64,000 bases of DNA from Zygnema circumcarinatum SAG 698-1b (taxonomy: Eukaryota > Plantae > Zygnematophyceae), in contig CM074810.1 of the NCBI GenBank assembly GCA_037447605.1, positions 1,956,880 to 2,020,879 of the forward strand. The letters are read 5' to 3'. Position 1 is the stretch's first letter; every line of letters starts with the position of its first letter. Positions 5,491 to 59,696 of this stretch are shown piece by piece. Under the pieces are notes generated by a model. It was not told the origin of the DNA, did not search any database, and worked only from the letters and a program-made list of their open reading frames with translations. The position numbers and the translations under genes are program-made.

Positions 5491-5578
5491 AAAATGGCAT
5501 TGATCTCACGATGGCGATGATGCCATCAAATGTACATGGACAAAAGCAGCATGGGGAACCACGAAGAACTGGTCGCAA
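5491..5578 (+). repeat. Dispersed intergenic element, copy A
   Basis: AAAATGGCATTGATCTCACGATGGCGATGATGCCATCAAATGTACATGGACAAAAGCAGCATGGGGAACCACGAAGAACTGGTCGCAA; aligns by eye with 21263, 29241 and 59622(-). Confidence 0.85.
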
Positions 5579-6072
5579 CCCATTAACATAGTGACATTCC
5601 ACTGACATAAAGTCCATGGCATAAGTGGTGGGTTGAACCTAACTTTTGTTCAAAGTTTCATTCTGCACCTTTGCGAGCCGACAGTCTTCGACGAACTGCA
5701 TGAACGCAGATACAACATTGACCGAACTTTCGATTAGGTTATGATTTTTGTTATGGCAAGTATTCAAACACACGCAAAGCAGACGGCATTGCTTTAGGAG
5801 CTGGCTGCTTGGAAGAAACGGCCACTTGCTTTATTTATTAGCCCTTCGTTAGGACCCATACAACCTTTATTGCCCAAAAATCTTCATCTGATCGTAACGG
5901 TCTATGTATGTACAGAGCGAGCCAGCCCTAGAACATGCTGTGGTCCTAACCAGCCACGAAGAAATGTGCACAACCCTCAGCATAATTTGGAGGTAGCGCA
6001 ACTACTTGTAGATAACCCTTTTTCCCACTTTCACCTATACTCTGTAAATCTACCCTCTCCATACATTCTCCC

Positions 6073-6260
6073 TCTCTCCCTCTCTCTCTCTCTCTCTCTC
6101 TCTCTCTCTCTCTCTCTCTCTCTCTCTCTCTCTCTCTCTCTCTCTCTCTCTCTCTCTCTCTCTCTCTCTCTCTCTCTCTCTCTCTCTCTCTTCTCTCTCT
6201 CTCTCTCTCTCTCTCTCTCTCTCTCTCTCTCTCTCTCTCTCTCTCTCTCTCTCCCTCTCC
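6073..6260. repeat. (CT)n/(GA)n microsatellite
   Basis: About 180 bp of near-perfect CT dinucleotide repeat downstream of the NHX stop codon. Confidence 0.97.
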
Positions 6261-6712
6261 CTTCCGTCAATGCAACGCGCAATCACCGACTGGCGTGCAA
6301 ATAGCAATGTTTCAGTGTGCGCTCCAGTAAAGCCCACAGTACACCCACAGCAACAAGACGATGTTCAGAACATTCATGGAGAAGTTCTTCATGTCTGGGC
6401 CCTTGTTGGCACATGGTACACTCTCGTTGCATGTGAGCGAGGCCTCCAACGCATGTTCTAAAAACCACCCGCAAGACTCCTCATGCTAAGCTTCAAGCCT
6501 TAGCAGCAGTTTTGTGTCCCATTCGTTTATGGATCTTGACCCTCCCTAGACATATGCGTAAGCAAATGCTTACCCATACATCCCCCCTCTCTTACGTTTT
6601 CACTCTTTTACCAACTTCCATCACCTTTCGTCAGTCCCTACCCATCTTCTGCTCGTCTTCCTCTCTTCTCCCTCCTTCCTGTCCACACCCCACCCCTTCT
6701 TCCTCTTGCTCT

Positions 6713-57900: not shown

Positions 57901-58228
57901 CCTGTGCTGATGATGCAGGTGCCTGCGAATAAAATTTGCTGTTTCGTAGAGTTTGAAAAGCTTCTCCAAAAGACAATTCTCCGCTGTGAGACGAAGATTT
58001 CTTCTGAATTGTGAGAGGCGGTGTTGATGGTGGAACAGAGGCGACATTTTCTGGGGGCAAGACTTTCCGTTGTGTAACAGAATTGTTGTTTGAGGTTGAA
58101 GAAGATCCAAACATATTGCTTGAGGGAGGGAAGAGATTTATGGCGCGATTGGGTCTATTAAATTCCATAACTTCAGAAAATGAGGGAATGTGAACCATCG
58201 GACGTTTGGAAGGCTCCCCATTCTCCAT
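54984..58228 (-). CDS. ERCC1: DNA excision repair protein ERCC1, 9 coding exons
   Basis: [102 protein letters not shown] (HhH). A 5' UTR exon probably lies near 59090. Confidence 0.96.
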
Positions 58229-59621
58229 GATTCGGCTACTTGACAAAAGCAAATAAAAAAAGCACACACACACCCACACCCTCATGAAGAACGTCAAGTT
58301 GGCAGCGATAAGCATTCGGCAAAAGCTTAAGGAAAGTTGAATCATAAAACATTGACAAAGATGGAAGAAAAAAAATCAAAAAGAATCGGATGTTGACTTA
58401 ATGAGTGCGTGCATGTCAGCGTCGAACTATACAAAAGAATAATACAGAAACTACCAACATCTGCCGAAATAGCTACAGAAAATTCAAAGAATTGTAAAGA
58501 AGAAACAGGAAATAATTAAGATTTTCCAAAAAATGGTGAGGAATCCTAGCGATCATGCATGCGCGGCCTACGGACCCTACAGCACTCTGAATCCTAGGAA
58601 ATTCTTCAGCACGAGTGAAGCCCATATGACCCAAGGTCTGAAACTTCTCGGGTAACTAATTGGAATAGAATGCTTAAATTAAGCTAAAACTGATGTTCGA
58701 CGGGTATGCTGCTCACAAATTCCAAACAATTTTTTTTGTGATAGCACTCTTCTTGCAGTGTTTAAAGTTTCACATTGCAGCGTTATGTGATTCTATGATG
58801 CTGTTACAGTAGTTTCCCTCCCCCCTCCTCCTCTCACCTTCTCCCTCACCTTTCACTCTCCCCCACTCATTTTTGTTTTTGCATCTCCCGCTTCCTATCG
58901 CTTTCTCTCTATCTTTCCCGCTGCCGTTCTTCTCCCTCTCCCTCTAAATAGCTACCCTGCTCCTTCCTCCTCTCCCACTCGTAACACACCCCCGGAAACA
59001 TTGAATCTTCGAATTTCCCAGACGCGTATGGAATCAATCAGTAAGCATATCAGACAGCTAATGCAACACCATCTGAAATTCTGTCACATACCGCTTCTGC
59101 TTTCTGGAGACTCCTCGCCTCTCCTATCCTGCAGCCCCGCGCAGTTCACAGCTGTTAACTTTGCATCCTCTGCTTAAGGGGGTCCTGCATATCGTGACCA
59201 TATTTCGATATTTCGATAATTCCAATTCGATACACCATATATTCACGATTCCAAGATTGTATCCAGGCGATATGGTACGGAAATAGTATCGTGCTGAATC
59301 GTATCGCGATGTATTGCAGTTTTTGTTTTCGTTTGGCAAATTTCTGACTTCTGATTTCTGAATTTCTTTCTTTCTGACTTTTCTGACTTGGTCGCCCAGT
59401 TCTTGTTAGACATCAAATAGGTGGCGGTGATATGCCACGTTTTTGTGGAACCAAGATGAGCCTGCCTCATGTCATCACTTTTCTGACGGGTGCCATTTTC
59501 TTTTTTCTTTAGTTCAAAGTGATCGAATGGTCTAATCTTTAGGGGGAACATGCAACTGAGCCAGTCACTTTTCAGTTGCAAGTCAGCAGCAACTGGCCAC
59601 CATGAACTTAGAAACATGGGA

Positions 59622-59696
59622 TCGTGGTTCCCCGTGTTGTTGTCGTTGTTGTCCATGTGCATTTGATGCCATCGTCGTGAGATCGATGGCATTTTT
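59622..59696 (-). repeat. Dispersed intergenic element, copy D (diverged)
   Basis: Minus strand reads AAAATGCCATCGATCTCACGACGATGGCATCAAATGCACATGGACAACAACGACAACAACACGGGGAACCACGA. Confidence 0.8.

Follow-up and report, generated by a model that had tools for sequence, protein, structure and literature searches.

The analyzed window, a 64-kb stretch of the Zygnema circumcarinatum genome, harbors a family of short dispersed repeats with five copies (A to E, four full and one short), whose resemblance to each other is far beyond chance. The copies are probably, although by no means certainly, derived from a short non-autonomous mobile element, and they are most likely 5'-truncated tails of a non-LTR retroposon, representing the 3' terminus of either a LINE or a SINE-like partner. 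This reading gains support because the copies, all fixed at one hairpin end, differ in length in a nested manner, and because three of the five are bordered by direct repeats, which are marks of insertion. An old mobile element had been mentioned in an earlier note on this DNA as the alternative to a boundary element, and it is this alternative that is strengthened by the nested series, the fixed hairpin end, and the direct repeats at the junctions. The interpretation is based on five copies in one window, among which there is neither an autonomous partner nor a longer copy, and no LINE was found within the 64 kb.

The output of a generic repeat finder run on the whole window was dominated by GA/CT and G-rich low-complexity tracts, and therefore a self-BLAST with low-complexity sequence filtered out was used. 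It detected neither further copies nor any other dispersed family in the window, so that the five copies (Table 1) are its sole dispersed repeat that is not of low complexity. An nhmmer profile was built from the four long copies A to D and searched against the window. It returned exactly these four, with E values ranging from 5e-28 to 1e-18, and the short copy E. The copies listed in the earlier note at 5491, 21263, 29241, and 59622, and the partial copy at 54601, were thereby confirmed, and the three conserved blocks ascribed to them were recovered in pattern scans of the window. Pairwise identities are 81-89% within the group of A, B, and C, and 70-75% between these copies and D. In the self-comparison, A is 87% identical to C, and B is 81% identical to C across 126 nt (the alignment of B and C extends over about 125 nt). 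A, B, and C have one 23-mer (AAATGTACATGGACAAAAGCAGC) in common without any mismatch, their blocks of 23 and 17 nt show complete or almost complete identity, and an exact 18-mer (GGCATTGATCTCACGATG) is common to E and A. The window contains four assembly gaps (45001-45010, 45687-45696, 46233-46242, and 47287-47296), all of which fall in tracts that are rich in GA or consist of poly-G or poly-C. Every copy is more than 7 kb distant from them, and none of the results reported here rests on continuity or frame across a gap.

Table 1. Positions of the five copies in the window and of the direct repeats that border copy A.
Feature	Position	Strand	Remarks
Copy A	5488-5580	+	nhmmer match 5488-5579, E 3.9e-27; 95 nt between candidate target-site duplications (5484-5578)
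Left direct repeat of A	5473-5483		CCCATTGACAT
Right direct repeat of A	5579-5589		CCCATTAACAT; starts at the very point at which A ceases to match B and C
Copy B	21257-21388	+	nhmmer match 21257-21347, E 4.8e-25; element proper 127 nt (21262-21388)
Copy B, whole insert	21234-21388	+	A23 + TTGTA + 127-nt element
Copy C	29236-29365	+	nhmmer match 29236-29328, E 5.3e-28; at least 127 nt
Copy D	59613-59701	-	nhmmer E 1.2e-18; ~80 nt common with the family, reverse orientation
Copy E	54594-54633	+	hairpin end only, 36-40 nt; nhmmer match 54599-54625, E 0.018

All copies are anchored at the hairpin end, and on the opposite side they stop at differing points, so that the shared lengths form a nested series of 36-40 nt (E), about 80 nt (D), 95 nt (A), 127 nt (B), and at least 127 nt (C). 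The far end of C is undefined, because the window contains no longer copy for comparison. Copy A has its hairpin end at the left (GGAAAATGGCAT...) and, compared with B and C, breaks off at GGTCGCAA. D has lost the GTAC and the tail, and E retains only the hairpin. A comparison of the flanks revealed that the tail common to B and C is truly absent beside A and D. One common (3') end combined with variable truncation on the opposite side is the arrangement expected for retroposon tails. The copies do not carry the same blocks, because they are truncated to different lengths, and a comparison of A, B, and C shows the hairpin to be more variable, not more conserved, than the remainder. The pattern of conserved blocks is weak evidence for a functional, protein-bound element. 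A gene for tRNA-Pro is located at 29499-29571 on the reverse strand, 135 nt away from copy C.

The earlier note had reported that no target-site duplications are visible, and this was not confirmed as stated: direct repeats of 11, 9, and 7 bp border A, B, and E, respectively, and coincide precisely with the predicted junctions. The 11-bp repeat of copy A contains one mismatch (p 0.036), the 9-bp repeat of copy B (GGATTTTAG) is present at 21225-21233 and 21389-21397 (p 0.035), and the 7-bp repeat of copy E (CTTTCTT) at 54587-54593 and 54634-54640 (p 0.077). These values stem from a geometry-constrained resampling, which yielded a Fisher's combined p of 0.03 over all five copies. No flanking direct repeat was found at the junctions of C and D. 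The direct repeats are modest evidence for insertion, and the null is inflated by the microsatellites of the window. A variable filler separates the direct repeat from the fixed end, namely, CAGAA in A and TTGTA plus a run of A23 in B. The fixed end does not carry a poly(A) or simple-repeat tail, and the sequence beyond it differs between the copies. The only homopolymer is the A23 in B, which reads T23 on the proposed sense strand and is thus wrong for a poly(A) tail. In agreement with the earlier note, our inspection revealed neither terminal inverted repeats nor A/B boxes nor a poly(A) tail common to the copies.

The end common to all copies carries a small hairpin whose loop reads ATCTCA(CG). 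In copy E, the loop TGATCTCACG is enclosed by a stem of 11 bp without mismatches (GGATGTGGCAT / ATGCCACATCC; fold z -7.3), and copy D contains a strong 9-bp hairpin (ATGCCATCG / CGATGGCAT; fold z -3.4). The hairpin is weak in A and B, and in C it is degraded and has no stable fold. The arms of the stem differ between copies but remain complementary (ATGGCAT/ATGCCAT in A, ATGCCAT/ATGGCAT in D, and GTGGCAT/ATGCCAC in E). These compensatory changes depend on how the 3' arm is aligned, which is ambiguous because of indels, and they could alternatively have arisen by templated correction of a quasi-palindrome, without selection. A structure of the whole element, at the RNA or DNA level, was also considered and rejected, as the folds of the complete copies A, B, and C were no better than those of shuffled sequences (z 0.2 to 1.1). 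An RNAalifold consensus did not contain any structure supported by covariation.

Pfam matches support the assignment of the genes for HDAC (+), DAP3 (+), ERCC1/Rad10 (-), and the mitochondrial carrier (-) and, weakly (E 7e-4), of an ADIP-like gene (+), while NHX (-) was assigned from characteristic motifs only. From these flanking genes and their strands it follows that all five copies lie in intergenic intervals between same-strand genes, and the tandem setting that had been claimed for every copy was confirmed for those flanking genes that could be tested. The further claim, that the family is restricted to such intervals, is not statistically meaningful. All five copies are indeed in tandem intervals, but their absence from divergent and convergent ones does not reach significance (with five copies, P is ~0.05 by interval count and ~0.17 by length), and tandem intervals without a copy exist: one is located between DAP3 and TMPK, and the interval between the 13.6k gene and the ADIP-like gene is probably a second. 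The avoidance of introns is the only feature of the placement that stands out, with a rough P of ~0.003 for the absence of copies from introns if insertions were uniform over the non-coding DNA. The copies lie at varying distances from the genes: at the extremes, the upstream stop codon is about 140 nt away in D and about 2 kb in C, and the downstream start codon less than 0.5 kb and about 1.9 kb. The mixed orientation relative to the genes was borne out, with three sense and two antisense copies. Copy D is situated 142-230 nt past the stop codon of the mitochondrial-carrier gene, the last exon of which is at 59846-60298(-), and among the copies it is the best candidate for a location within a UTR. 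An ORF at 59243-59704(-), which starts at an ATG inside copy D, was rejected as coding, because its frame is not conserved among the copies and early stops are present in A and B.

We infer that the copies were spread by RNA-mediated transposition, with a sense strand that is the reverse of the strand used in the earlier note, and with recognition of the hairpin by a reverse transcriptase. The 3' module shared on this strand would consist of the small stem-loop, with the loop TCGTGAGAT and a variable stem, followed by CCATTT(T)CC, and the element would terminate with ...CATCGTGAGATCAATGCCATTTTCC. Target-primed reverse transcription that halts early could have generated the differing upstream starts, and staggered cuts of the target could have generated short direct repeats of variable length; the variable length that was observed fits this mode of integration. 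The stem-loop, with its conserved loop and differing stems, may be what the reverse transcriptase recognizes, in the manner of "stringent" LINE/SINE pairs. The exclusive presence between genes would then reflect a bias of insertion or retention, copies in exons and introns having been lost from a compact, intron-rich genome, and it does not testify to a function. That introns are strictly avoided could reflect targeting of gene ends, or else insertions into introns may be strongly selected against in this lineage.

It is unlikely that the family spread at the DNA level, as a hairpin-ended, Helitron-like, or other cut-and-paste or rolling-circle derivative that was variously deleted on one side. 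The subterminal hairpin, about 9 nt from one end, does resemble the 3' hairpin of Helitrons and single-strand transposons, and the published repeat annotation of this species reports many short elements, with MITEs making up 4.3% of the genome (PMC11096116). However, the candidate duplications differ in length (7, 9, and 11 bp), while those of MITEs have a fixed length and Helitrons generate none, terminal inverted repeats are missing, and nested truncation from one side is typical of retroposons. In addition, the hairpin is followed by CCATTT[T/C]... without a shared CTRR terminus, the junctions differ, and the insertion sites lack a consistent A/T. The least probable explanation is that the family consists of genes for small non-coding RNAs, of a snoRNA-like or another structured type, that are scattered between protein genes. 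Such genes would be short, intergenic, and hairpin-bearing like the copies, and they can be missed by Rfam. Yet the covariance models of Rfam 15, a comparison that had been proposed in the earlier note, did not match any copy even at E values up to 10, and ARAGORN did not predict a tRNA in the copies, nor was there a match to 5S or another RNA family. The shuffle-like folds of A, B, and C, the RNAalifold result, the differently truncated lengths, and the lack of C/D or H/ACA boxes conserved across the copies also argue against this explanation.

Somewhat less probable than transposition at the DNA level is a functional, protein-bound cis-element, possibly an exapted repeat, that would act as a boundary, a read-through block, or a promoter-distal module between tandem genes. 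The confinement of all copies to same-strand intervals and their absence from introns would fit this function, as would the 23- and 17-nt blocks of A, B, and C and a palindrome (ATGTACAT) within the middle block. Nevertheless, the earlier proposal of a protein-bound boundary or insulator element did not gain from the analysis, because the distances to stop and start codons vary (0.14 to 2 kb), the orientation is mixed, and the tandem preference is within chance, with at least one tandem interval being empty. Moreover, due to the differing truncation the blocks are not common to all copies, and marks of insertion are present. Judged from the sequence, the insulator reading is not supported. A combination of both ideas is improbable, though less so than RNA genes. 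It posits that a retroposon-derived module was co-opted as an orientation-independent, protein-bound element and retained between same-strand genes of this very compact streptophyte-alga genome, where it may limit read-through or insulate the downstream promoter; its putative binding sites would be the loop ATCTCACG and the blocks AAATGTACATGGACAA and GGGGAACCACGA.

The family is apparently undescribed. No description was found in the literature, and the Zygnema genome paper gives only totals of repeat classes (PMC11096116). No candidate proteins matched the ORFs that span a copy in a protein collection that apparently lacks this organism's own proteome, and a search of the same collection with the membrane ORF was also without a match. 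The search with the HDAC protein retrieved relatives only, the best of which (P0006) stems from Logan RNA contigs of another species. It shares about 79% DNA identity with the HDAC coding sequence, and no copy of the element is present in the P0006 transcripts of that species. Two pattern scans of metagenome contigs with pairs of conserved blocks yielded 0 matches. If the retroposon interpretation is true, the family would be ordinary genome furniture, a short retroposon-tail family that may be present thousands of times in a genome that is among the smallest of streptophyte algae. Its importance would lie mainly in repeat annotation and in the avoidance of false "regulatory motif" calls in intergenic DNA. 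The 3' stem-loop, with its fixed loop and variable stem, could also serve as a handle in the search for the autonomous partner and in studies of template recognition by its reverse transcriptase.

Several known classes of elements share features with the family. MITEs have a similar size and are abundant near genes, and the Zygnema genome has been reported to be rich in short elements (PMC11096116). In contrast to MITEs, the family lacks terminal inverted repeats, the two ends of insert A and those of insert B being non-complementary, and the candidate duplications are not fixed in length. Like tRNA-, 5S-, and 7SL-derived SINEs, the copies are short, dispersed, non-coding, close to genes, and likely to have been mobilized in trans. 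However, a Pol III promoter is lacking, as inspection of the copies did not reveal an A/B box consensus, a head with similarity to tRNA, 5S, or 7SL RNA is also lacking, and no 5' end can be defined, as the length varies from copy to copy. Repeat-derived insulators and boundaries exist, e.g., those derived from tRNA genes or SINEs, and the copies resemble them in their location between neighboring transcription units and in their shared blocks, but their position versus gene ends is not fixed and they are partial. Stringent-type LINE/SINE pairs with a 3' stem-loop are exemplified by UnaL2/UnaSINE1 of the eel. The family differs from such tails in having neither a known autonomous partner nor a poly(A) or short tandem-repeat tail, and in the filler nucleotides, in B including a 23-nt homopolymer, that adjoin its fixed end. 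With 5'-truncated LINEs and stringent LINE/SINE tails it shares the common 3' end, the variable 5' truncation, the lack of terminal inverted repeats, and the short terminal stem-loop with a kept loop and a stem that may vary; the candidate flanking repeats of A, B, and E also resemble theirs in being of variable length.

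The five copies A to E of the short intergenic repeat form a real, well-defined dispersed repeat family. An nhmmer profile was built from the four long copies A to D and run over the window, where it matched them with E-values from 5e-28 to 1e-18, and beyond these and the short copy E no further matches were found. An 18-mer is identical between E and A, and in shuffled versions of the window the pattern scan with this 18-mer never reached five matches. The pairwise identity is 81-89% within A, B and C and 70-75% versus D, and A, B and C share the blocks AAATGTACATGGACAAAAGCAGC and TGGGGAACCACGAAGAA with complete or near-complete identity. 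Direct reading and nhmmer thus make the homology at the five places and the shared blocks clear, as the earlier note had claimed. Self-BLAST with low-complexity filtering brought up no other dispersed repeat family in the 64 kb. The count of five covers the window outside four N runs at 45.0-47.3 kb (45001-47296), all within poly-G, poly-C or GA-rich tracts and none closer than 7 kb to a copy; a further copy could hide in a gap. None of the conclusions rests on these N runs. The sequence around them is rich in GC, at about 56-57% in the 2-kb bins between 44 and 48 kb, and also contains a GH5 cellulase-like gene on the minus strand.

The Rfam search proposed earlier gave no match to the copies, even at E-values up to 10, and pattern scans of metagenome contigs gave no match to the element. 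The only Rfam match in the window is a tRNA-Pro(AGG); 135 nt separate it from copy C, and the DAP3 start codon follows after about 256 nt. The Zygnema circumcarinatum assemblies are 71 Mb in size, and the repeats of SAG 698-1b amount to 23.4%, with simple repeats at 6.4%, MITE at 4.3%, Gypsy at 2.9% and Copia at 1.9% (PMC11096116). The family is not described in that repeat annotation.

Repeat copies with their intervals, direct repeats and neighboring genes in the window
Feature	Position	Strand	Detail
Copy A	5488-5579	+	nhmmer match; NHX(-), stop 6713, to 402-aa ORF(-), ATG 3573
Copy B	21257-21347	+	nhmmer match; ADIP-like gene(+) to HDAC(+), ATG 22741
Copy C	29236-29328	+	nhmmer match; HDAC(+) to DAP3(+), ATG 29827; tRNA-Pro(-) between C and DAP3
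Copy D	59613-59701	-	nhmmer match; mitochondrial carrier(-), stop near 59845, to ERCC1(-)
Copy E, short	54599-54625	+	nhmmer E 0.018; ERCC1(-) to next minus-strand gene
Direct repeat left of A	5473-5483		CCCATTGACAT
Direct repeat right of A	5579-5589		CCCATTAACAT; begins exactly where A ceases matching B and C
Direct repeats of B	21225-21233, 21389-21397		GGATTTTAG on both sides
Direct repeats of E	54587-54593, 54634-54640		CTTTCTT on both sides
tRNA-Pro(AGG)	29499-29571	-	Rfam match
Metalloenzyme-superfamily (phosphoglycerate-mutase-like) gene	53197-53574	-	first recognisable exon

All copies have one end in common, GGAAAATGGCATTGATCTCACGATG, and on the opposite side they break off at differing points. 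Copy E retains 36-40 nt, which is the hairpin only, D about 80 nt, A 95 nt, B 127 nt, and C at least 127 nt, a lower bound because the match between B and C stops at B's own end. The tail common to B and C was not found anywhere near A or D, and therefore these are real truncations. A small hairpin with the loop ATCTCA(CG) forms at the fixed end; D (9 bp, z -3.4) and E (11 bp, z -7.3) have a strong version of it, A and B a weak one, and C has lost it. The arms vary with pairing kept (ATGGCAT/ATGCCAT in A, ATGCCAT(CG)/(CG)ATGGCAT in D, GTGGCAT/ATGCCAC in E), changes that are not counted as formal covariation; indels of the 3' arm in A, B and C leave it uncertain whether the arms are homologous. 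Over its full length the element showed no fold that was stable or conserved.

Direct repeats are present at the predicted junctions of three of the five copies. Because microsatellites abound in the window, a loose search for repeats of 9 nt or more is successful at 8.9% of random places, and therefore a geometry-constrained test was used. It yielded p-values of 0.036 (A), 0.035 (B) and 0.077 (E), with a combined p of 0.03 (Fisher). In this test no flanking direct repeats were found for C, the far end of which is undefined, and D, the most diverged copy. As insertion marks the direct repeats are suggestive, not conclusive, and they speak against the reported absence of target duplications. 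Terminal inverted repeats and Pol III boxes are indeed absent.

Pfam and motif evidence confirmed the flanking genes and their strands, and all five copies lie in intergenic intervals between same-strand genes, as had been stated. It had been proposed that the copies function as boundary or insulator elements between tandem genes. Roughly counted, the window has 7-9 tandem intervals, together about 10 kb, and six divergent or convergent ones, together about 4.5 kb. If five intergenic insertions fell at random, all would be tandem with a probability of about 0.05 when intervals are counted and about 0.17 when length is used. At least one tandem interval, DAP3 to TMPK, and probably another, from the 13.6k gene to ADIP, contain no copy. 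The tandem location stands as an observation, but a restriction to such intervals does not follow from it. The upstream stop codon is between about 140 nt (D) and about 2 kb (C) away, the downstream ATG between less than 0.5 kb and about 1.9 kb, and the orientation relative to the genes is mixed as claimed, with three sense and two antisense copies; these values do not fit a terminator or promoter element at a fixed place. In addition, the copies are incomplete and cut to different lengths. The one aspect of placement that stands out is the absence from introns: introns make up about two thirds of the non-coding DNA and hold none of the five copies (rough P 0.003, from approximate gene spans). 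Retention or insertion bias explains this as well as function does. An insulator role is thus of low probability, with no support from position, spacing, orientation or copy completeness.

Several further features of the window were observed. The HDAC start codon was confirmed by P0006, an HDAC relative from Logan RNA contigs of another species, and in a protein search the sequences closest to HDAC came from Zygnematophyceae and land plants. An HDAC intron contains a (GGGGGA)n tract, G-rich and about 650 nt long (24850-25530), whose complementarity to the C/T-rich 5' leader of the gene (22518-22656), 2.3-2.7 kb upstream, is imperfect (72-76%). C/T-rich leaders precede several genes (6036-6270, 12200-12640, 15773-15883, 33484-33574), and the HDAC transcript of the relative has one in its 5' UTR (L001:1-354). 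On the 3' side of the ADIP-like gene, a 9-nt tandem array of about 60 GCAGAGAGA-like units (19457-20011) can be read without stops in three frames (SRE, ERA and REQ repeats) and yields predicted ORFs of 200-300 aa; it may be coding or intronic. Self-BLAST revealed isolated palindromes at 18449-18504 (56 nt, 86% self-complementarity) and 48969-49002 (34 nt, 100%). Copy E lies within the long "membrane protein" ORF 53865-54722(-), so the true start is probably not the first ATG (54722). Only about 290 bp lie between the end of the ORF and the first exon recognisable for the phosphoglycerate-mutase-like gene, which follows on the same strand; alternatively, the serine/proline-rich N-terminal part of the ORF could belong to that gene as a leader exon. 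A 153-aa ORF (59243-59704, minus strand) starts with an ATG within copy D; it is probably spurious because it has no Pfam match and its frame is not conserved among the copies.

Most likely, the copies are retroposon tails, ordinary in kind though apparently undescribed. They would represent 5'-truncated insertions of a non-LTR retroposon, read on the strand opposite to that chosen in the earlier note. It is the joint occurrence of a fixed stem-loop end, nested truncation, flanking repeats of variable length, and the lack of terminal inverted repeats and Pol III boxes that forms this pattern. The alternative of an old mobile element, also raised earlier, is therefore favored by the fixed end, the truncations and the flanking repeats, the last of which are only suggestive. 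Three features fit less well: a poly(A) or repeat tail is absent, as had been noted, a short filler lies between flanking repeat and fixed end, and in B the A23 run lies on the strand opposite to that expected for a poly(A) tail. In "stringent" LINE/SINE pairs the template is recognized via a 3' stem-loop whose loop is conserved and whose stem varies, and the copies likewise combine a conserved loop with a variable stem at their proposed 3' end.
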